Assembly (NCBI GenBank): GCA_028023455.1
Contig: JAQFVV010000004.1
Coordinates: 26,226,001-26,290,000 of the forward strand
Origin: Epiperipatus broadwayi
Lineage: Eukaryota; Animalia; Onychophora
Length of the DNA: 64,000 nucleotides
Reading direction: 5' to 3'
The position numbers were made by a program, and so were the translations under genes. Under the pieces are notes generated by a model. It had not been told where the DNA came from, made no database searches, and worked only from the letters and a program-made list of their open reading frames with translations. Positions 10,537-56,708 of this stretch are shown here, piece after piece. Within the stretch, counting starts at the first letter, position 1; every line of letters begins with the position of its first letter.

Positions 10537-10956
10537 AGGCAAAACTCTCCATAAAGTAGTGCCACCCTGTGCTAACCAGAGTAATCAATAGATTCCAGAA
10601 GGCTTGTGCAAAAAATCCCTATCTAGTGCCTACTCATTCAATATCCCCAGACTAGTTTCTGGCTTGTGGCCATCATCAGTGAGGAGCATTGGATCTGAGA
10701 GCACTGCACCTAGATTTTAGGATCCAATGCAACCCTCCAGCAGCCACCTTTTATCTCTACTTTACTACAAAACTATGAGAATGAAATTGAAAACACAAAA
10801 ATATTTTCAGTCTAAGCTCAATAGCTTATATAGTCATAGGGCATCTATTGATTACTCTGGTTAGCACAGGGTGGCACTACTGTATGGAGAGTTTTGCCTT
10901 TGTTTACAACAATTATGTGCTAGTATGAGATGGTGATCATGTGATGTTTAGTGATT
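10537..10956. mobile_element. Small non-coding HHR-bearing PLE-type insertion, family A copy 1
   Basis: Flanked by a 14-bp TSD with one mismatch (taatttttatgcat 10523-10536 / taatatttatgcat 10957-10970). Internal ~56-bp inverted repeat (10538-10593 vs 10843-10898). Related copies at 50777 and 56396. The paralogous site at ~32915-32930 is empty. Confidence 0.85.
10644..10685 (-). ncRNA. Minimal type I hammerhead ribozyme (family A)
   Basis: Minus strand: TCCTCA CTGATGA TGGC-CACAA-GCCA GAAA CTAG TC^ TGGGGA. Full CUGAUGA/GAAA core, 4-bp stem II, palindromic stem III (ACTAGT), GUC site, 6-bp stem I. Confidence 0.88.
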
Positions 10957-40421: not shown

Positions 40422-40493
40422 GCGCTGGTGATCTAATGGTTAGCATAGCTGCCTTCCAAGCAGCTGGCCCAGGTTCGCTTCCCAGTCAATGCA
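40422..40493 (+). tRNA. tRNA-Gly(TCC)-like sequence, probably a pseudogene or SINE head
   Basis: GCGCTGGTGATCTAATGGTTAGCATAGCTGCC-TTCCAA-GCAGCTGGCCCAGGTTCGCTTCCCAGTCAATGCA closely follows eukaryotic tRNA-Gly(TCC). It has a C.A mismatch in the acceptor stem, two T-stem mismatches, and C instead of A58. Confidence 0.75.
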
Positions 40494-41677: not shown

Positions 41678-43983
41678 AAGTTAGATATTCCTTAAAATGT
41701 TATCTGCAGTACAATAACGTTGATTAAAGCAATGTGTTGGTGAAGCCAGGAGCAGATTCAACAATTAATGAATAATAAACAGGTCAGTTGTAAGTTTGAG
41801 CATTATTTAATTAATCTTTAATCATAAAATGAATTTGAACTGCTTCTTCTTTAATTAAGTGTCAAAATATTCCAGCAATTCATAAATAGACTAATTCTGG
41901 ATTCCTGGATTCTTAATCAATTTAATAATAATAAGTATTTTTTTATTGGCATTGACTGAAAGATAAAAAAATATCAATAAAGTCTTGCAAGAATAAATTT
42001 TACCAACTTTTTCCTCTGCTAAATTTATAAAAAGTATTTTGAAGGTATCAAATTTTGTATATCGTTTTTAAAGGTGGCTGAAACTTCAAAATAATTCATT
42101 TTCTATTTTCCTTTGTTTAAAATAAAAAATATATACTGCTGTAAATTTTATTTGTAACAAAAGAAAAACTGCAGCAGTCTTTTACTAATGATATTCTATG
42201 TAACTTGTTTCTTTTAAAGTGTAAATTAATTGCTTTTTAATTAATGTCAGTTCCAAAGTATATATGTGATAAATATTAGAATTAATTAATAATAACCAAA
42301 AAATTCAAATTAACTAACAATGATTATGATAAGATAAAAATGAATATCCTCTGCTGATACTTTATTGATTTCTGGTAGCTTTTCATCCTGATATCTCTAA
42401 TTAATTTTGAAACAGTATGGCAGTTTGCATTCTTTGAAGATAGCACAAATTAAGCATTTTCTTTAGCAATTATTATTTGATGCATAGCTGGGTATACACT
42501 GTAAGATCACAAACTCTAGCTTTTCATTTATTTAACTTATAAAGTGATAATCATAAAATTAAAGTGAAAACTGATTAACTTCATTGTTAAAAGCTATAAC
42601 ATTCCATTCTTTTTTCCTTTCTTTCTATAACTTTTACACATACCTCTGGATGCATATTTATGCTTTTACTGCATTTTTTATCCCTTCAAATTTAAAAAAT
42701 TGAAGGTGCAACATTTAACACTAGTATTACTTCAACCTTATAATTAATTCAACCGTAACCTTTCTAATTAAAGAAACTGCTTAAACACATGTTTGTCTAG
42801 ATAGTTGAAAAATTATTTAGCTTAATATATTTTTAAATCTACTTTTTTAATTTTATTTAAAACACTCATTAACTTTATTTTATTTAAGAATTTCTTCTTA
42901 ATGTTATTATAATCATTATTTTTCAATATTATTATAATACTTTTTAAAAATTAATTAATGCTTTTATTAATTTTCAGTCTTCCTTTCCATACATGCACCA
43001 AAATATTATACACTCACATGTATTTAAGGAAATAACCTACTTTTAAATATAATAATTAAACTCTTTAACACAATTTATTAAATCCAAAACTTCAATCGAT
43101 TAGTCTTAAGTTTAATATACTGAACTCTAAATTCATTCAAAGACTATCTAAATAATCACTATTCTATTTAAACATTGTTTTAAATGCACCTACTGTAAAA
43201 TAAACTAAAACAAACTATAACACATTTAATAAACTATAACTGGTAAACATCTACAGAAGTTAATTTAACATAACTCCTCTAGAACGGTATACTCTAATTT
43301 AAAAATTACTCAAGTTTTGACTGCTAAATTGAAATTCTAGACATCTATTAATAAACTAAGCAATATTTCTCAAATTATTATTAATAGAAAAGTATTTAAT
43401 AAAGTGTTTTATTGACAATTGAAAGCATTTAACTAATATTTAATATTTAATTGTTTGAAGTGTTTTAATTATAGAATTATATGTTAACTAATATTATGCA
43501 AGTTAATCACAATAAAAGTTCACTTGTGACAAGGATAGACTTATTTAAAATAAAATAAAAATTAAATTATTATAACTTATATTTAACTCTTACGGGCTTA
43601 AATATACAGTTACAATATGTATGTATATAAATTAAAAATGCATATAACTCTACATACAATATTAGCCAAAACTACAAAATTTTACAAAAATTCTTACACA
43701 ACCATGGTTCCATCTATTAATATTTTGTTGTTTTGATTAGTATTGTAATGTTATATGAATTTCTATTTTATTTTTAATTACTAGTACAGCATTACACAGT
43801 ATTAAATATATATATATAAAGGTTTATAATTTTTTTACACATAAATGTAAATATAAATATTATAACTTTATTTTTCTTATTGCATTGCCAAATCTATATA
43901 ATATTAATATCATTTATAATAATAAATCATGCTTTCACACTTCCAACATAAAGTTATAACAACAAATTGAAAACTAAATTAAA

Positions 43984-44028
43984 TGGCTAAGCGCTTTCAA
44001 GAAGATGTACTTCTCATATTCATAGCCA
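43984..44028 (-). ncRNA. Variant hammerhead-like motif (A3-U8 core) in a PLE 3' UTR
   Basis: TGGCT ATGAATAT GAGAAG-TACAT-CTTCTT GAAA GCGC TT AGCCA, about 70 nt after the PLE stop codon. Confidence 0.7.
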
Positions 44029-44096
44029 GTTATGATCCTTTCTTTGAAATCATTATATAAATAAATCTGATATGCAAATTATATGCAAATGAGTCA

Positions 44097-44925
44097 CTAA
44101 GACCATCTTTTAGATATCGCAAAACATGCATCTTTATGATTAATGGTGAAAGAGTCCTCTGCTATAAAGTATGCTTCTTTTACTTTTCGCCTAACATCAT
44201 GTCACTCAGTACAAACTAATTTTGCAGATGTGGGTTCGAACACATGTCCCGACAATTTTTGATGCTGAGCATTCGTATTGTATTTATACCTATGTTGTGA
44301 TATCCTAGTAGCTATGGTGGCTCTCGTTTCACCATAGTATGATGCCTTACATCCATTATGAGGGCATGCCACTCTGTACACAGCCTGTGGAGTCTGATCA
44401 GAAGCTATAGTGTCCTTAGTGTTGTTAATAAGCCTATTAGTTGAGTTAGGTGTATGGAAACTCAAACGAAATTCCTTAGAAAAAGTCTTATAAAATGTTT
44501 TATGTAAAGAGTGCATGTAGGGCAACAATATCCAAGGCCTGTTGTCTTCATCTCTGTGTTTTCCAATATTATTTACAAAACGTCTAATTTTGCTATATAC
44601 TATATTGCGCCTGTATCCTGATTTGATTAAGTTGTTAGTATAATTAGTTAAGTTAGACCTTCTATCTGCCTCAAACTTGCACAAATAGTAATTTCTGAAA
44701 AGAAATGAAGTCAATCCAGCAAACTTGTGAGTCATAGGTGTGTATGACTCATGGTGAATCTGTCCACGAACTTCTGGTGGCTTCATAATCATTGCATAAT
44801 TAAGCATATTTCCTTCTCTGTGTACCTTGATATCTAAATATTTTACCTCTTGCCCCATATCTTCCCATATAATATTTAAATTTAATGCTGTGTTCGCTTG
44901 TATCCGATCTTGCTTTTTTCAACCC
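44097..44925 (-). pseudogene. 5'-truncated Penelope-like element (RT thumb + GIY-YIG endonuclease)
   Basis: HSIKF..., KYLDIKVHR, AVYRVACPHNGCKASYYGETR...ISQH. Reads through an in-frame TGA (44202-44204) to RRKVKEAYFI...ISKRWS*. Collinear with the 51.5-53.8 kb ORF. Confidence 0.88.
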
Positions 44926-45356
44926 ACTAAACCAGTGGATTGTAAAAAAGCATTGTAAAAAGTAAAAAAGAACATTAAATACTATTAAATATAAATATAT
45001 TTATAAATGGTATATATTTATGAAAAAAAAACAGCATAATATTAAAATATAAAATTTTATAATATGAAATATGATTTCATAAAGAAAAAATATAATAGTT
45101 TAGCTATTTATTAACTAATAAAAAATCAACAATAATAAGAATATTATAAATAATATGGATTAGTAAATTAAAGAACATAAATACAGTATATATAAATAAA
45201 GAACAATGAGCTGTGCTAATTGCTCTAACAAGCATTATTGATAAATTCCAGCAAGACAAAGCATTTTAAAATCTCTACCTAGAAACCACACCCTAAACTC
45301 AGACCAATGGTTTTATGTTCTGGCACTCCTCAGTGAGACCTGAAAGTACTCTAGCG

Positions 45357-45398
45357 CCTCACTGAGGAGTGACAAATCACGAAACCATTGGTCTGAGG
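45357..45398 (+). ncRNA. Type I hammerhead ribozyme (family B), intact
   Basis: CCTCA CTGAGGA GTGA-CAAA-TCAC GAAA CCATTGG TC^ TGAGG. All core positions present, perfect stems I and II, quasi-palindromic stem III, GUC site. Confidence 0.9.
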
Positions 45399-45786
45399 TT
45401 AAAGTGTGGTTTCTAGATAAAGATTTTAAAATGTTTTCTCTTGCTGGCATTTATCAATAAATCTTATTAGAGCAATTAGCACAGCTCATTGTTTTTTATT
45501 TGCAAGTTTAAAAAGATTAGGTCATTTGATATATGACTTTAATTTTTATTGACTATTTATAGTCTTGTGCTTTAAAGTCTTAAGCAGTGATATATTGCTA
45601 AGACTATTAATATATGGTTTGGCTGAAGATCTCTTAGCCCCCATGTAGTTATTTGAGTTGGATAGCTGGGTTTGAAGACATGTAGGTGTCTGAAAATTTC
45701 AGATTTACCACTCAATAGATAACTTTTAGATAAATTCTGGCTTTGGGTTGGTATTTTTAGATCTTGTGTCTAAAACTATCCTAGCA

Positions 45787-45828
45787 GATCACTGAAGAGT
45801 GCCAAAGCATGAAATCATTGGTCTTAGG
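45787..45828 (+). ncRNA. Second family B hammerhead, stem I partly disrupted
   Basis: GATCA CTGAAGA GTGC-CAAA-GCAT GAAA TCATTGG TC TTAGG. Stem II covaries with the first copy. Confidence 0.65.
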
Positions 45829-47079
45829 TATAGATTTTAAATGCTTTGTCTTGCTGGCATTTATCAATAAAGCTTGTTAGAAAAATTAGCATAGCTCATT
45901 GCTTTTATTTACAAGCTTAAAAAGATTAGGTCATGTGATATAGGACTTTAATTTTTATTGACTATTTGCTTTAAAGTCTTAAGAAATCTTATATTGGCTA
46001 AAGCTATTAATATATTGTTAGGATGAAGATATCTCAGCCCCATATAAGTATTTGAGTTGGATAGCTGGGTTTGAAGACATGTAGGTGTCTGAAAATTTCA
46101 GATTTTCCACTCAATAGATAACTTTTAGATAAATGCTGGCTTTGGGTTGGTATTTTTAGATCTTGTGTCTAAAACTATCCTAGTGCCCACTGAGTTGGTC
46201 TGAGGTTAGGATGTGGTTTCTAGATAGAGATTTTAAAGTCCTTTCTCTTGCTGGCATTTATCAATAAAGCTTGTTACAGCAATTAGCACAGTTCATTGTT
46301 TTTTATTTATAAGCTTATAAAAATTAGGTCATGTGATATATGATTAATTTTTATTGACTATATAAATAAAAATTTGTAGTGATTATAGATATAGTTAGTT
46401 TAAATAATATATGATATAAAATAAATTAAAAAGATATGGTTTTTTTTTTTTTTGGAAATTTGTAAGAAATTGAAATAGTATTAGATAGATTAAAACATGT
46501 TTATAATATTTATAATTGTAGAATAAAAAGGTAAATATAAAAGAAAGTTATTAATAACAGAAGATTGAATAAAAGAATAGTAGATATTATATATAATTTA
46601 AAAATATATATATTTAGTAAATGGATCAATGTTGAATGAAGAAATATATAATGATAAAATCATAAGTATTTTAAAAAACTTTTATTTAAGTTACAATCTC
46701 TGATTGTTTGATGGTTTCATTTGCTTCTTAGTTTGCAAACACTTTCATTTAAGAATAAAATATTAAAATTAAGATTTAATATAATTATAGTCAAAAGAAT
46801 TTGTTAAAATTTGATACATTTCTTATAAATCATGGTTGATGCCATATGACACAAATTTTTTACAGAGGCTTCCTAAATTCTTAAATCCAAATAAATGGGT
46901 GGATGAAATTACAAATATTTTGATATCAAATTTAAAATACATTCACAAGATTTCAATAAGTTTTTAATAATGCATGGAAGAGGGTGGTATGTATATATAT
47001 AAAATTATTCAAAACAATACAATAATTAATACAGTAAAACAATATTTAAAAAAACAAACAAATATATATCACAATTTAA

Positions 47080-47119
47080 TAGAAGTACTTTCAACTATCT
47101 ATGTAGTCGTTATCAACTA
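47080..47119 (-). ncRNA. Variant hammerhead-like motif (U3-A8 core)
   Basis: TAG TTGATAAC GACTA-CATAGA-TAGTT GAAA GTAC TT CTA. Stem I is extendable (CAATTTGA/TTAAATTG). Confidence 0.65.
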
Positions 47120-48184
47120 GATTCAAATTGTATTAGAAAAAACTGTTACAAATGTAAACAAAAAGTAATACGTCATACATCAATTTTCCCACAATTCATT
47201 AATTTTTATATTGGCAGCCTGTCTATTTATCAAATGTTGCTTTTCACTTTTTATTAATGTAGCTTCTTTAATTTTGCGTTTATTATTATTTCTTTCAATA
47301 CACAAAATCTTAACTTTATTAAAATCAAAACCATAATTACATATTACATTATGATCAAAAAATACAGATGGTGATACATCATCATTTCTAACATTCTCTT
47401 GTCTTGATTTTTGTACTTGTTTATATAACAACAAATGCTCCTTTGATCTTTTCTCCAATGTACATCGAGATTCACCAATATATGCCTTTCCACAAACATG
47501 CAGCCATTTATATATTGCACAACTTTGATTTAAAATACTACATCTATTTTTGGAATTATTTATTAATCTATTTAAATTAGGAGTAGTATAAAATGCAACT
47601 CTACGTATATTTTTATATATCTGTTTTATAAATTTCACTTGTTCATTACAAATATAAAAATATAAATTTATAAAACATATATAAAAATATATGTCGAGTT
47701 GCATTTTATACTACTCCTAATTTAAATAGATTAATAAATAATTCCAAAAATAGATGTAGTATTTTAAATCAAAGTTGTGCAATACATAAATGGCTGTGTG
47801 TTTGTGGAAAGGCATATATTGGTGAATCTCGATGTACATTGGAGAAAAGATCAAAGGAGCATTTGTTGTTATATAAACAAGTACAAAAATCAAGACAAGA
47901 GAATGTTAGAAATGATGATGTATCACCATCTGTATTTTTTGATCATAATGTAACATGTAATTATGGTTTTGATTTTGATTTTAATAAAGTTAAGATTTTG
48001 TGTATTGAAAGAAATAATAATAAACGCAAAATTAAAGAAGCTATGTTAATAAAAAGTGAAAAACAACATTTGATAAATAGACAGGCCGCCAATATAAAAA
48101 TTAATGAATTGTGGGAAAATTGATGTATGACATATTACTTTTTTGTTTACATTTGTGACGTTTTTTTCTAATACAATTTGAATC

Positions 48185-48224
48185 TAGTTGATAATGACTA
48201 CATAGATAGTTGAAAGTACTTCTA
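48185..48224 (+). ncRNA. Variant hammerhead-like motif (U3-A8 core)
   Basis: TAG TTGATAAT GACTA-CATAGA-TAGTT GAAA GTAC TT CTA, about 60 nt after the TGA at 48123. Confidence 0.65.
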
Positions 48225-48357
48225 TTAAATTGTGGTATATATTTGTTTTTTTAAAATATTGTTTTACTGTACTAATTGTTGTATTGTTTTGAATAATTAT
48301 ATATATTTTATTATAATTGGAATACAGACATTGATTAATAATTTATATATATATATA

Positions 48358-48728
48358 TAATATACAAATCAATATATATATATATCAAAATACAGTACAA
48401 TTACATAAATTATATTATTTTAGAAGTACTTTCAACTATACATTTTGTAGTCTTTATCAACTATATAACATTGAATAATCAAAATGAGACAACCTTTAAC
48501 AATATCCATAGTTCAATTCAGATTTCCCACAATTCTGTTATCTTAACATTTGATGACTGTTGATTCATTAAAATTTGATGATTTCTTGAAATCAACATAG
48601 CCTTTTGATTATTCAATGTTATATAGTTGATAAAGACTACAAAATATATAGTCGAAAGTACTTCTAAAATAATATAATTTATGTAAATTGTACTGTATTT
48701 TGATATATATATTAATTTGTATATTACA
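48358..48728. mobile_element. Short PLE 3'-end insertion with inverted pseudo-LTR arms
   Basis: Arms ~48358-48487 and ~48603-48728. The spacer encodes MLISRNHQILMNQQSSNVKITELWEI* on the minus strand, homologous to MLIKSEKQHLINRQAANIKINELWEN*. Each arm carries a U3-A8 HHR-like motif (48421-48463 minus, 48624-48666 plus). Confidence 0.82.
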
Positions 48729-48872
48729 TATATTGTGAAACGAATACAGATATCAAACTTTATTATATATATTGTAACGATATCAAACTTTATTACAATA
48801 TATATAAGTTGAAACAAACACAAATCTTGATTATAAAAATTTTCTTTCTAAAAGAACTATAACATTCTTTAT

Positions 48873-49419
48873 AATATTAATATCATCTATGTTCTTTATT
48901 ATTTTTACAATGCTTTTTTCTACAACCTAAGATTCTTCAGAACTCCTACTTATATCTCCAAATCTTATACTACTTCATAAGAAGATAAAGAATACTAGAA
49001 ATAGAACTTCAATAAGAAGAAAGAAGAAACATAGAGTTAAGATTTGGAGATATAAGTAAAAGTTCTGAAGAAGATTGCTGGGGAATCAAAACTGTCATGT
49101 TAAGTTGTAAAAAAGCATTGTAAAAGTAATAAAGAACTTACATAATATTAGTATTATATGGATTTGGCAATGCAGTAGGAAAGATAAAGTGATAATATTT
49201 CATGAAGAAGATAAAGAATACTGGAAATAGAGCTTGGATAAGAAGAAAAAACAACAACATAAGGAGTTAAAATTTGGAGATATAAGTAAAAGTTCTGAAG
49301 AAGGTTGCTGGGACAATCGAAACTGTCATATTAGATTGTAAATACATTGTTAAAGTAATAAAGAACATACATGATATTAATATTATATGGATTTGGTAGT
49401 GCAATAGGAAAGATAAAGT
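48873..49419 (+). mobile_element. HHR-like tandem element, family D (inverted ~100 bp + two ~230-bp units)
   Basis: Perfect 15-bp TSD tataacattctttat (48858-48872 / 49420-49434). CTGAAGA cores at 49065 and 49295. The second reads CTGAAGA A GGTTG-CTGGGA-CAATC GAAA CTG TC, with stem I poorly paired. Confidence 0.75.
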
Positions 49420-50776
49420 TATAACATTCTTTATTTTGGTAATAAATTTTATCAAAAAATGTTTTTCAAATAAATATTATAATGTAAATGATTTTTAATC
49501 TATATGATAGTTACAATTTCAGTGATTGGTTGTGACTAACCAGTAGATATATATGCAAACTATTTTTTAAACAATAATACATTAACCTTTGGGATGCTTC
49601 TCATGAATTATTTCATTTTTTGACCAATTCGCCCCCTGGTGATTTTTTTCATAAGTATTATACGTTAAAATGTGTGTAAAACAGTATATTTTATTATATT
49701 TAATTTTCACTGAAGAATTTGTGCTAAAAAGTGAAAAATTCAAAATTCTCATTCTTACTATAGACACAAGCCCCACCCTGACATGTTTAGCCATTGTCTG
49801 TTGCCAAGGCTGTAAAATGTTCAACATTTTACAATATTGTTTAAAGAAAATAGTTCCAATGACCAAAAACATGTTTATTTGCAAATTTATTACTGTTTTG
49901 GATATTTGTTTTATAATAATTTACTATATTTATTAGATATCAAGAAATATAAATTATTAATAACTTATTTTGACTTGAAATAATTTATTTTCAAAAATGT
50001 AATGTTATATTAGCAGCAAATTTAAATATGGCCTGAAGTAATTTAAAAACTTAGCTTCTATGTAAGCAATCTACTTATGCTTACAAGTATGAAAATATCA
50101 CAGTTTTGCAATAAATATTCACATATTTTAAACTTTTAAAGCATAATTCATTAGATATAAAAAAATTAATAAATATTTCGTTGATTTTATAAACTGAAAA
50201 TAATCTTTCTAGAAACAGTGATGTGTAAATTCTTTGTTTTAATTACAATCTCATTTTTTTAATATTTACAGAAACAAAATGTGAACATTTAAAATTTATT
50301 TCAGTAGTAAACAAAAATATCAACTGAAATTAAATTTGTTATTTTTGGATAAATAATAATCATTTAATCATATATTTTACATTGATTTGTGAGTCAAAGA
50401 AAAATGTCAGAAAATGCTGAAATGTGAGAGTCTTAGACTGTATGTCAGAAGGGTTAAAAAGTATTTTCATGATAATTTAAAATTCAAACAAAAACAAATC
50501 TTTGTAAAAATTCATTTTTTTAAAAAATTGATATTTTTTCTATGATTCTAAAAACTGACTTATTAACTAGTTCATTATTATGCATGAATACAGCACTATA
50601 GAATTTTCAAATTTGCAATATCGAGTTTATGTTTAGAATTGTGGGAAACTATGCAGTTTACACATGCACATTTTACATTTTTGGATTAATCTTTTTCTTA
50701 TGTTTTAGAAAATGTAAGTTCTAATTTTCTATCGTAAAAGTTGACAATTTTCTGATAATTTTTGTGATCAAGTAAA

Positions 50777-50927
50777 AAACAGGCAAAACTCACTATACAT
50801 ATTGCCACACACAGAAAGCTAGAGTAATCAATGGATGCCAGAAGGCTTGTGCATAAAATCCCTATCTAGTGCCTATTCATCCAATATCCCAGACTAGTTT
50901 CTGGCTTGTGGCCTTCGTTGGTGATCA
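50777..50927. mobile_element. Family A copy 2 (short, degenerate HHR on minus strand)
   Basis: Shares aggcaaaactc...gaaggcttgtgcataaaatccctatctagtgcc...agactagtttctggcttgtggcc. 14-bp TSD tgtgatcaagtaaa (50763-50776 / 50928-50941). Confidence 0.82.
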
Positions 50928-51370: not shown

Positions 51371-51411
51371 CGCTAAGCGCTTTTGAGGCCATTTGCCTCA
51401 TATTCATAGCG
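51371..51411 (-). ncRNA. Variant hammerhead-like motif (A3-U8 core), 3' pseudo-LTR
   Basis: CGCT ATGAATAT GAGGC-AAATG-GCCTC AAAA GCGC TT AGCG. G12>A in this copy at a CpG; the upstream copy has GAAA. Confidence 0.65.
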
Positions 51412-51481: not shown

Positions 51482-53764
51482 CTAGATAGTCCAACGTTTG
51501 GAGATGTCAAAGCAGGTATCCCGTCTATTGATAGCATTATTATTGCCATTAATGAAGTATGCTTCTCTGATTTTCCGCTTGATGTCGTTTTTCTCAATGC
51601 CGACTATTTTGGGGTTGGAGGGTTCAAACACATGTCCTGTCTTCTTGGAATGTTCTAAGAATGTTGATGAGTTATCGTTATTTTTCTTTGCTCTATTATA
51701 GGTGTATCTATGTTGTGCTGTCCTGTTGATTATGCCTGCTTTGGTTTCCCCAAAATAAATGGCCCGGCAACCGGGTTGTGGGCATGATATGCTGTAAACG
51801 ACATGGGGGGGGGTCTGAGAAGGTTCGGTTTTATCCTTAGAGTTATTGATTAGACGATTAGTGCATGGGGGTGTATGAAAACTAATTTTAAATTTATTGG
51901 ACAAAACCTTAATTAATTGGTAGGAGATTTTAGGTATGTGTGGAAGAGTGATATATGGAATTTTAGTATCGTTTTTATTGTCTACGATTTTCTTATAAAA
52001 TTGTTTAATTTTATTGTTAATAGTGTTGAGTTTGTAGCCTGCTTGTAGTAGGTCTTTGGTGTATAGATGTATATTATTCTTTCTATCCGCTTCAAACTTG
52101 CACAGTTGCATATTTCTGTATAAAAATGCTTGAAGGCCTGCAAATTTGTGAGAGCTTGGTGAATTGGAGTGTGGGTGTATAAAGCCTCTGATTTCAAAGG
52201 GCTTTATTATCATTGAGTAATTTATTGTTCTCTCATCCTGTGTTAGATGAAGGTTGAGGTAATTTAGACTTTGGAAAGCATCTTCTGTTGTGGAATTGAT
52301 AGTTAGATTAGTGTTTTGTGATAAATCTTGTATGATACTATTTGTAATGTGTTGGTTGGCTAAGATGAATATATCATCTACGTACCACATGTATATAGTG
52401 TGAGGGCAGTCAGCTTGATATTTGGATACAATTAGTTTTTCGTAGTGATTAAGAAAAATGCTGGTAACAATTCCACTGAGTGGGAGACACATAGGCCATC
52501 CACTTTTCATGTTGTACCAACTGTATTCAAATGTGGTATAGATGTGTTTGTCCATCCATGTCAAAAATGTAACGATAAAATTAATGCGTTCAGCTGAGAG
52601 CATGTTGGTCAGTTCTTGTAGGATGATTTGGATGGATTGTTTTCTGTCAACTGATCCATATAATTCTTTGACATCGAGGGTAGTCATGTGGAAGTTGTTC
52701 TCGATCTTGACTTTTTTGATTTTCTCCACAAATTGAAAAGACGAATTAATAAAATAATTTCCAAAGCCCAAGCTATCTATTAGTATTTGATTAACCATTT
52801 TCGCAGTTTGAAAATAATGGACTCCCCCAAAATCCATCATTAAACACAGTGGTTCTCCAGGCTTATGGAGTTTAATATTGGCAAATATTCTTGGAGCTTT
52901 AGTGGAGGAGGGATAAACTTGGTAGTATTCTGCAATTGAAATGCCTTTGTTTTTATGTGGACCGAGAATGGAAGAAACAAATTTATCATGGTTAAGGTTA
53001 TTGTTGAATTGTGCAACAGGAGTGAGTTGTAGATTTGCAATTTGTTCGTTTATTTTTGTCTTATAATCCTGAGAATGTAAAAGCACAAATCTGTTGCCCT
53101 TGTCTTCTTTAAGGCAGTTTAAATTATTATGATCTAGAAACTGTTTTGTAATTTTGATGTCACTATTCCAGCTATTATCTTTTATGTATAACTGTTTCTG
53201 TTTAATAGATTTAGATATATCTGTTATGATACTATCTCTATGCGAGTTATTAATTAGATTTGCTTCGACATCAGCAATAAGTTCTAGTTTGGGTTGTTTC
53301 CATTGGCCTCCTATGAATCTCAGTCCAAGGAATAGAATTTTTGTTATCCTATCGGGGAGGCCAGTCCTATTAACATACGAAGCTTTCTGTAAGTCAATAT
53401 TTATGTTTTGTTTATAAGCTAAAAATTTGATTTTAAGAGCAAAGTGTTTGCGGTGGTTTATTTCTGTAAAGTTGAGTTTATCGATAATCCATTGGGGGTG
53501 GGTACTATTTGCCGTTATTGTGAGCCATCTTTTTCTTTCTTTACGTAATGCATTACTGCATCCCCGTGTGATGAAAATCAAGAGGTGCTTTTGTAGTTTA
53601 TTAATGATTTTGTCACGGTTATATATAGAGCTGTCTATTTTTATTCTGCAACAGTTAGGAACAATATTAAATTTCTTGCATTCAGACAAAAATGTTAGTC
53701 ACTGTTTCAATGTTTTGACTGAAATGCCAAGGTGTAATGTAAGCCTTTGTTGATAAAAATTCAT
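51482..53764 (-). CDS. PLE reverse transcriptase / GIY-YIG endonuclease (760 codons; one in-frame TGA at 53699-53701, so probably disabled)
   Basis: The track start (53689) is a TTG. An in-frame ATG lies at 53764 (MNFYQQRLTLHLGISVKTLKQ*LTFLSECKKFNIVP). RT: LDVKELYGSV, GWPMCLPLS, YVDD. EN: VVYSISCPQPGCRAIYFGET...QH...H...KRKIREAYFI. Confidence 0.88.
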
Positions 53765-53879: not shown

Positions 53880-53920
53880 GCTAAGCGCTTTCGAGGCCAT
53901 TTGCCTCATATTCATAGTGG
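53880..53920 (-). ncRNA. Variant hammerhead-like motif (A3-U8 core), upstream pseudo-LTR
   Basis: CACT ATGAATAT GAGGC-AAATG-GCCTC GAAA GCGC TT AGC. Intact GAAA, one stem I mismatch. Confidence 0.68.
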
Positions 53921-54285
53921 TAATGCGAGATGCAGAATGAGGAAATAGGGCAAGGAAACAAAGCGGTATGCAAAGTGTATGCAAATGAGCTAGATAGTCC
54001 AACGTTTGGAAATGTCAAAGCAGGTATCACATCTATTGATGGCATTATTATTGCCATTAATGAAATATGCTTCTCTGATTTTCTGCTTGATGTTGTTTTT
54101 CTCAATGTCGACTATTTTGGGGTTGGAGGGTTCAAACACATGTCCTGTCTTCTTGGAATGTTCTAAGAAGGTTGATGAGTTATCGTTATTTTTCTTTGCT
54201 ATATTATAGGTGTATCTATGTAGTGCTGTCCTGTTGATTATGCCTGCTTTGGTTTCCCCAAAATAAATGGCCCAGCAACCGGGTT

Positions 54286-54490
54286 TTTAATAATAAAAAA
54301 TGCTAAAAGTAAAGATTTTGACAATATATATATATAAAGTGAGGTCGATTATAGACTACTACAATGTAAATTTCAAAGATACATACCAAATACAAAGAGA
54401 GGTGGCAATTGATGAAGCTACTACTAAATGTATGGCCATAGTAGCATGAAGCAATATGAGCCCTAAAACCTATAAAGATAAGATAAATAA
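54286..54490 (+). pseudogene. piggyBac-like transposase relic, 3' part
   Basis: NKNAKSKDFDN..KVRSIIDYYNVNFKDTYQIQREVAIDEATTK-GHSSMKQYE-PLKPIK matches the piggyBac K-x-RP...F...S-x-DE...KGR...KQY-x-P-x-KP-x-K block containing the first catalytic Asp. Confidence 0.75.
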
Positions 54491-56395: not shown

Positions 56396-56708
56396 AACAG
56401 GTAAAACTCTCCACACATATTGCCATTCAATGCAAGCCAGCATAATCAATGGATGCCAGAAGGCTTGTGCATAAAATTACCATCTAGTGCCTACTCATCC
56501 TATATCCGCAGACTAATTTCTTGCTTGCTGCCTTCATCAGTGAGGAGTCTGGGGATATTGGATGAGTAGGCACTAGATGGGGATTTTATGCACAAGCCTT
56601 CTGGCATCCATTGATTACGCTGGCTTGCATTGAGTGGCAATACATATGAAGAGTTTTTCCTGTTTTAATAACAGTTATAAGCAAGCATAATAAATGGTGA
56701 TCATGTGA
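56396..56708. mobile_element. Family A copy 3 (hairpin with ~110-bp arms around a minus-strand HHR at 56505-56546)
   Basis: Perfect 13-bp TSD tattctgtacaaa (56383-56395 / 56709-56721). Same termini as copies 1 and 2. Confidence 0.87.

Follow-up and report, generated by a model that had tools for sequence, protein, structure and literature searches.

In natural hammerhead ribozymes, covariation of the consensus core pair C3-G8 to U3-A8 has been described, and in vitro activity is reported for the covarying pairs (Perreault et al. 2011, PMC3088659). The minimal hammerhead ribozymes (min-HHRs) of Penelope-like elements (PLEs) are characterized by a nucleotide inserted between positions 9 and 10.1, by a palindromic 15.2-16.2/loop 3 segment and by action as a dimer (PMC4209133). 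Those of the Cercyon PLEs in Schistosoma mansoni, with ~1,300 matches, were described as having 'U3-A8 instead of C3-G8' (Cervera & De la Pena 2014, PMC4209133), and pairs of min-HHRs lie on opposite strands 100-700 bp apart in S. mansoni (PMC4209133). In the Poseidon element of Anolis carolinensis, the single changes C3G and G8C each abolish cleavage, which is partly rescued in the C3G/G8C double mutant (PMC11167929). Head-to-head 5'-truncated copies and hammerhead motifs placed in pseudo-long terminal repeats (pseudo-LTRs) are part of the published anatomy of PLEs (PMC8557442). Here we describe four hammerhead motifs with a U3-A8 core in 64 kb of DNA from Epiperipatus broadwayi (contig JAQFVV010000004.1, positions 26,226,001 to 26,290,000), referred to below as the window and numbered from its first nucleotide. 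Judged from the sequence, the four motifs are most probably genomic remnants of two related PLE subfamilies, F1 and F2, which carried the hammerhead in their 3' tails, in the pseudo-LTR region.

Four copies of a U3-A8 hammerhead motif

The window was searched with the exact pattern TTGATAA-N-GACTA-N(4-12)-TAGTY-GAAAGTACTTCTA. Four matches were found, at 47080-47116(-), 48188-48224(+), 48421-48460(-) and 48627-48666(+), and the TAG preceding each of them widens the copies to 47080-47119, 48185-48224, 48421-48463 and 48624-48666. No match was obtained in 100 dinucleotide-preserving shuffles. The positions and the sequence that a first-pass annotation had given for the motif were thus borne out, all copies reading TAG-TTGATAA-(C/T/A/A)-GACTA-loop-TAGT(T/T/T/C)-GAAA-GTAC-TT-CTA. 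Half-motif searches allowing 2-3 mismatches recovered no further copy in the window, intact or decayed.

Each of the four copies was found by the exact pattern and parsed by structural descriptor scans. Copy 1, in the left arm of the F1 insertion (47080-47119, minus strand), reads UAG-UUGAUAA-C-GACUA-CAUAGA-UAGUU-GAAA-GUAC-UU-CUA, with cleavage predicted between 47083 and 47082. Copy 2, in the F1 right arm (48185-48224, plus strand; predicted cleavage between 48221 and 48222), where the arm identity is 95%, is the same except that the extra base is U, a change of CpG to TpG. In the F2 insertion, copy 3 of the left arm (48421-48463, minus strand; predicted cleavage between 48424 and 48423) has A as the extra base, a loop II of 9 nt and a G10.1-U11.1 pair, and copy 4 of the right arm (48624-48666, plus strand; predicted cleavage between 48663 and 48664) has a helix II that is Watson-Crick throughout (GACUA/UAGUC).

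Read as a hammerhead, the motif starts with UAG, the 5' strand of helix I, followed by core positions 3-9 (U3 U4 G5 A6 U7 A8 A9) and an extra nucleotide after A9 (C in copy 1, U in copy 2, A in copies 3 and 4). GACUA and UAGUU (UAGUC in copy 4) form a 5-bp helix II, which is closed by a loop of 6 or 9 nt. Then follow G12 A13 A14, the helix III region A15.1-GUAC-U16.1, the cleavage-site nucleotide U17 (an H17, not G) and CUA, the 3' strand of a helix I of 3 bp. The hammerhead core nucleotides U4 G5 A6, A9, G12 A13 A14, A15.1-U16.1 and H17 are present in all four copies. The consensus C3 and G8 are absent; in their place stand U3 and A8, which keep an isosteric Watson-Crick pair, so that the structural role of the pair is preserved. 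The traits of PLE min-HHRs are found as well, namely the nucleotide between 9 and 10.1, the palindromic 15.2-16.2/loop 3 and the position in the pseudo-LTR or 3' tail. Pair 10.1-11.1 is G-C in copy 4 and G-U in copies 1-3, and C11.1 forms a CpG with G12. The 5' UAGUU (the helix I strand plus U3 U4; sites 47104-47119, 48185-48200, 48448-48463 and 48624-48639) is identical to the 3' strand of helix II.

Only helix II (5 bp) and helix I (3 bp) are available in cis. Since the 6 nt AGUACU are palindromic, helix III requires two copies and exists solely as an intermolecular helix of 6 bp. Cofolding predicted this intermolecular palindromic helix, the dimer being 4.4-7.2 kcal/mol more stable than two monomers; the full dimer with both helices I is not nested and hence not scorable by folding tools. 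An extension of helix I (CAAUUU/AAAUUG beyond an internal loop) was seen in F1, was not conserved in F2 and was treated as chance pairing in A/T-rich sequence.

A match to such a motif might arise by chance, when an AT-rich inverted repeat fits a relaxed descriptor by accident. Chance matches become easier once C3-G8 is relaxed to A/T pairs in DNA with 73% A+T, and relaxed scans of the window did give spurious, non-palindromic matches. A descriptor with no constraint on positions 3 and 8 (NUGANNA with at most one extra base, >=4 bp in helix II, GAAA, a loop of 2-6 nt that is palindromic, U-H and >=3 bp in helix I) nevertheless had 6 matches in the window compared with 0.17 per shuffle, and for the U-A state alone 4 were observed against 0.03 per shuffle. 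The fixed position behind GIY-YIG open reading frames (ORFs) and an architecture common to the other PLE lineages of the window and to published PLE hammerheads also speak against coincidence, which we regard as hardly credible. The 3-8 states of the six descriptor matches were one C-G, one A-U and four U-A, all six Watson-Crick, and no non-Watson-Crick combination occurred among the descriptor matches in the window. The 3-8 covariation across families that the first-pass annotation had proposed therefore holds within the window, since all good hammerhead-like matches in the window carry a Watson-Crick pair (C-G, A-U or U-A) that the descriptor did not require.

Two palindromic PLE insertions

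An inverted-repeat search grouped the four motif copies into two inverted-repeat pairs, and the copies therefore represent two insertion events rather than four independent samples. The F1 insertion (46995-48306), found by repeat search, consists of two 5'-truncated PLE 3' ends arranged head to head. Its arms, 46995-47628 and 47669-48306, are 93-97% complementary and form a 1.3-kb palindrome around a 40-nt centre (47629-47668). The F2 insertion (48351-48733; repeat search and sequence) lies 45 nt from F1 in (TA)n-rich DNA and comprises a short PLE 3' tail and its own inverted copy, with arms (48351-48484 and 48603-48733) that are 94-98% complementary.

The protein remnants at these loci amount to a C-terminal 149 aa in F1 and 28 aa in F2. 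In the F1 left arm, an ORF at 47183-47629(-) from the ORF list encodes the C-terminal 149 codons of a PLE protein (GIY-YIG endonuclease region, ..AYIGESRCTLEKRSKEH..INRQAANIKINELWEN), and its stop codon lies ~60 nt upstream of the hammerhead motif. A mirror fragment in the right arm (47677-48120, plus strand), recovered by tblastn and from the inverted repeats, shares 95% protein identity with the left-arm copy. In F2, the last 28 codons of a related PLE ORF (..MNQQSSNVKITELWEI) remain in one arm only, at 48524-48607(-), as found by alignment and by tblastn with 50% identity to F1. The motifs thus sit 60-100 nt behind GIY-YIG C-termini, within head-to-head 5'-truncated insertions, in agreement with the anatomy published for PLEs (PMC8557442).

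Both the F1 and the F2 fragments can be aligned to the C-terminal end of a 735-aa ORF (51482-53689 of the window, minus strand) that has YVDD and a GIY-YIG-like block, and to public proteins bearing RVT_1 and weak GIY-YIG Pfam matches. The best public matches of the F1 149-codon fragment are C-termini of RVT_1/GIY-YIG proteins at 30-37% identity. Pfam gave no significant family match on the window's own ORFs, and the public relatives of the window PLE proteins found by protein searches are distant (25-37% identity), so that the PLE assignment rests on alignment and architecture. Being 5'-truncated, with arms that have diverged by 2-7%, the F1 and F2 loci are dead insertions. Any selection on the motif consequently acted on the active source elements and not on these loci.

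Conservation of the motif and probable CpG decay

Between F1 and F2, the motif is identical at 37/40 positions and the flanks at 131/216 (~61%; Fisher p = 4e-5). The differences within the motif are confined to loop II, the extra base and a change of G-U to G-C at 10.1-11.1. The structural conservation postulated by the first-pass annotation is in keeping with this result, the U3-A8 motif having been kept well above its flanks in the PLE 3' tails.

The window has 27% G+C, a CpG observed/expected ratio of 0.26 and a TpG/CpA ratio of 1.2. This depletion of CpG together with the enrichment of TpG/CpA is the signature of germline CpG methylation and deamination, and it explains several of the arm differences in the PLE palindromes. 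Within the insertions, the arms of F1 differ by C/U at the extra base and those of F2 by U/C at 11.1, both in CpG dinucleotides, and these differences are most simply read as CpG-to-TpG decay after insertion. On this reading, the extra base of the source elements was probably C in F1 and A in F2, and G10.1-C11.1 was probably present in the F2 source. U11.1 is present in both F1 arms. The proposal that the extra base is free to vary is therefore only partly upheld: the copies do carry C, U, A and A, but the C/T difference falls in a CpG, and only part of the variation reflects active elements.

With decay of this kind at work, U3-A8 itself might be a product of mutation of C3-G8 in dead copies and the covariation an accident. 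Both changes are AT-ward transitions, C-to-T and G-to-A being the commonest in an AT-rich, CpG-depleted genome such as the base composition of the window indicates, and the four copies come from two insertions of one lineage. Neither position 3 nor position 8, however, lies in a CpG. The double change is common to two subfamilies with ~61% flank identity, and the other G and C residues (G5, G12, GAC, GUAC) are unchanged in both, from which we conclude that the change predates the split of the subfamilies and persisted during transposition. Moreover, the A3-U8 core of a sister lineage would need two transversions, and a 3-8 combination other than Watson-Crick is missing from the descriptor matches in the window. 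An origin of the U3-A8 core by decay is thus very improbable. A simple route for the core change would lead from C-G through a U-G wobble to U-A by two transitions.

Core types elsewhere in the window and in public sequences

All PLE coding remnants of the window were mapped by tblastn. The comparison type with the core ATGAATA-T and the palindrome GCGC, to which the first-pass annotation had referred, was confirmed at 43984-44028(-) and 53881-53917(-). The former accompanies a PLE remnant at 44100-44903, and the latter lies in the upstream repeat of the full-length PLE with the 735-aa ORF (51485-53689 by tblastn), with an upstream partial tandem PLE copy at 53993-54286. A downstream A3-U8 copy (~51375-51411, minus strand) has AAAA in place of GAAA; as G12, the general base, is changed to A, this copy is expected to be inactive. 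Common to the A3-U8 and the U3-A8 motifs are the extra base, G15.2..C16.2 in a 4-nt palindrome (GCGC and GUAC, respectively) and U16.1-U17. The helices II of the A3-U8 lineages (GAGAAG/CUUCUU and GAGGC/GCCUC, with the palindrome GCGC) are unrelated to that of the U3-A8 motif. In the C-terminal domain, identity is 50% between the two A3-U8 elements and only 27-32% between these and the U3-A8 elements. The type of core thus goes with the protein lineage in what is a very small sample.

The canonical C3-G8 motifs of the window sit in non-coding repeats, at 10644-10685 and, in family B, at 45356-45399, and truncated relatives of the 10644-10685 family were found at ~50860-50925 and 56481-56579. 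The suggestion that coding PLEs carry an A/U core and the small non-coding families C3-G8 is therefore true within the window, but it is based on two deep PLE lineages and three small families.

Seven look-ups of contigs encoding relatives of the window PLE proteins yielded three different canonical C3-G8 minimal motifs, in the near-identical contigs L003 and L004, in L005, and in L002, where the motif is cut by the contig end. All of these have an extra base and a short palindromic loop. Their occurrence weakly suggests that C-G may be the ancestral state and that the A/U cores may be derived. A family-specific pattern unconstrained at positions 3, 7 and 8 had no match in metagenome contigs. 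A weak U3-A8-like candidate, AACA-TTGAGAA-T-GAC..GTC-GAAA-CGCCG-TT-TGTT, was met at L001:1393-1434(-) (GCA_001594075.2, KQ979128.1); it was distrusted because its helix II has 3 bp and its loop is not palindromic, and it may be a chance match. At a distance of 1.6 kb from this candidate is a GIY-YIG fragment that is a distant relative of the F1 protein. On a PLE-like metagenome contig, a hammerhead-like stretch (L006:1685-1735) overlaps an ORF stop, has the irregular core CACACC-ACUGACG-GGGUG..CAUCCC-GAAGAUCU-AGUGUG and retains the palindrome AGAUCU and a 5-bp helix I.

Other features of the window

The truncated relative at 50860-50925(-), ~450 nt downstream of the 3' motif of the full-length PLE, is a 5'-truncated copy of the canonical non-coding family that starts inside hammerhead helix II (GGCCACAAGCCA-GAAA-CTAG-TC-TGGGA). 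The second relative, at 56481-56579, is a near-perfect hairpin that drew a weak Rfam call as mir-3923 (45 bits, against a gathering score of 94). This call was rejected, as the hairpin actually consists of head-to-head copies of the canonical non-coding family, with the same GAGTAGGCACTAGAT flank as at 10616-10640. One of its arms starts 3 nt upstream of the predicted cleavage site, which lies between GTC and TGGGGA, and the other with the first helix I base. A further stretch at 46024 ('TTGATAAAGACTAC...') proved to be a variant of the family-B repeat and not a hammerhead. The sole Rfam match above the gathering score in the window, at 40422-40493(+), is a tRNA-like sequence of 34.7 bits in which several pairs of the acceptor and T stems are non-canonical, and may be a tRNA pseudogene or the head of a tRNA-derived short interspersed element.

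Discussion

Taken together, the motif most probably belongs to a PLE lineage of minimal dimer-type hammerheads with an isosteric U3-A8 core, which was kept while the elements were active and would cut after U17 in dimerised PLE RNA, probably with help from a protein. The fold of the motif and its conservation are evident from the DNA itself; dimerisation, catalysis and a biological role we infer from the literature on related ribozymes. Two motif copies in PLE RNA would pair via AGUACU to build a shared helix III, and each core would then fold with the U3-A8 pair holding residue 8 in place. In catalysis, G12 would be the general base and the 2'-hydroxyl of residue 8 the general acid. The RNA would be cut after U17, between GUACUU and CUA, probably assisted by the PLE protein, and such cleavage could trim the transcripts of tandem or pseudo-LTR-flanked elements.

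Several points weigh against an active ribozyme of this kind. Helix I is short, at 3 bp, and every helix is rich in A and U; in three of the four copies a G10.1-U11.1 wobble takes the place of the G-C pair that is normal for the family; and the cleavage triplet is CUU, not GUC. GACUA can pair with the 5' UAGUU instead of with the 3' strand of helix II, and this alternative is the predicted monomer fold of copies 1-3. The UAGUU-GACUA hairpin could be an inactive conformer that dimerisation would resolve, or a coincidence. Independent evidence is thin, with two insertion events of one lineage. The Rfam hammerhead models gave no match at gathering scores or at E<=10, in the whole window or in 47040-48720, and returned spurious microRNA-like matches on the palindromes. 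Since Rfam also misses the canonical C3-G8 minimal motifs of the window, its models are blind to the dimer-type motif in general. Aligned to 43900-49500, two small sequencing runs yielded repeat-copy contigs of 90-99% similarity and no pile-up of ends; as these are short Logan contigs of uncertain library type, they say nothing on transcription or cleavage. From the literature, PLE min-HHRs cleave poorly in vitro (PMC4209133), and cleavage is dispensable for insertion in vitro in Poseidon, the one PLE studied biochemically (PMC11167929).

Some of these points would fit a motif of hammerhead descent that has lost cleavage and was kept as a conserved RNA element of the PLE 3' tail, either as a template-binding or initiation signal for the reverse transcriptase/endonuclease or as an RNA dimeriser acting through the palindrome. 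Hammerhead mutants of Poseidon had no effect on insertion in vitro, its ribozyme requires the PLE protein and no RNA sequencing ends were found at its site (PMC11167929). The low in vitro activity of PLE min-HHRs (PMC4209133) and the ribozyme-weakening features listed above, namely the 3-bp helix I, the G-U pair at 10.1-11.1 and the CUU triplet, point in the same direction. On the other hand, all positions of the catalytic core are intact in the four copies and 3-8 is still a Watson-Crick pair. A pure protein-binding site would not need this exact set of core nucleotides, and covarying 3-8 pairs are reported to be active (PMC3088659). We therefore consider a loss of cleavage unlikely, if less so than decay or chance, and prefer the reading of the motif as a dimer-type ribozyme.

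A broader reading, which we put forward tentatively and hold to be somewhat less probable than its opposite, is that, from one lineage to the next, the PLE hammerheads of this genome moved through at least three of the four possible Watson-Crick states at 3-8 (C-G in distant relatives and non-coding families, U-A in F1 and F2, A-U in the sister lineage), all of them still catalytically competent, and that A/U cores would be the main ribozyme of autonomous PLEs. If this is true, the elements would provide a natural isosteric series for a catalytic tertiary pair, and descriptors based on CUGANGA would miss most PLE ribozymes in such genomes. The motifs are additional evidence from nature for a structural role of the 3-8 pair in hammerheads. 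Furthermore, whole PLE lineages have ribozyme motifs that escape the Rfam models and, by definition, CUGANGA descriptors; PLEs and retrozymes would accordingly be under-counted when AT-rich animal genomes are annotated. A new mechanism is not implied, as publications of 2011-2014 already cover U3-A8, the extra nucleotide, the palindromic loop and pairs on opposite strands.

Comparison with known systems

Different from the first-pass annotation, which had proposed one variant ribozyme class, we do not regard the motif as a new class. The hammerhead-type fold with a Watson-Crick U3-A8 pair stands; the feature is real and its structural reading right as far as the sequence goes, but U3-A8 is already published (PMC4209133, PMC3088659) and the motif belongs to the published minimal hammerhead variant of PLEs. 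The closest system by published description is the Cercyon min-HHR (PMC4209133): in both, U3-A8 stands in the core, the nucleotide between 9 and 10.1 is unpaired, helix I is short, helix III is minimal or palindromic, and the motif lies in pseudo-LTRs. Frequent single motifs from truncated PLEs and opposite-strand pairs 100-700 bp apart are further points of likeness. The window motifs differ in that helix II has 5 bp compared with 7-8 bp in Cercyon and helix I has 3 bp compared with 4-5 bp, and in the G-U pair at 10.1-11.1 of three copies. The host genome also appears to be a different one, the window PLE proteins being ~25-37% identical to any public protein.

The hammerheads of Perreault et al. 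(PMC3088659) show the same compensatory core change, but theirs, taken from a general survey, are full hammerheads with a stable helix III and not dimer-type PLE motifs. The A3-U8 min-HHRs of the window (43984-44028 and 53881-53917) resemble the U3-A8 copies in the extra base, the 4-nt palindrome, U16.1-U17 and the site behind a GIY-YIG ORF, and differ in an inverted 3-8 pair (A-U), A rather than U at N7, GCGC rather than GUAC, an unrelated helix II and proteins of 27-32% identity. No paper was retrieved when the literature was searched for 'A3-U8' in combination with hammerhead, and A3-U8 may be a less-described state.

The Poseidon hammerhead (PAc) is likewise borne by a PLE and its 3-8 pair has been tested; it differs in being canonical C3-G8, overlapping the ORF start, and being protein-assisted and dispensable for insertion in vitro. 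Finally, the canonical C3-G8 min-HHRs of the public contigs (L003/L004, L005 and L002) and of the window (10644-10685 and 45356-45399) are similar to the U3-A8 copies in having a helix I of 3-6 bp and in lying next to PLE ORFs or in retrozyme-like repeats. The extra base is present in those of the public contigs and absent from the two of the window, and loop III is short and palindromic in all except 45356-45399. What sets this group apart from the U3-A8 copies is the C3-G8 core, mostly combined with a GUC-type or other cleavage triplet.

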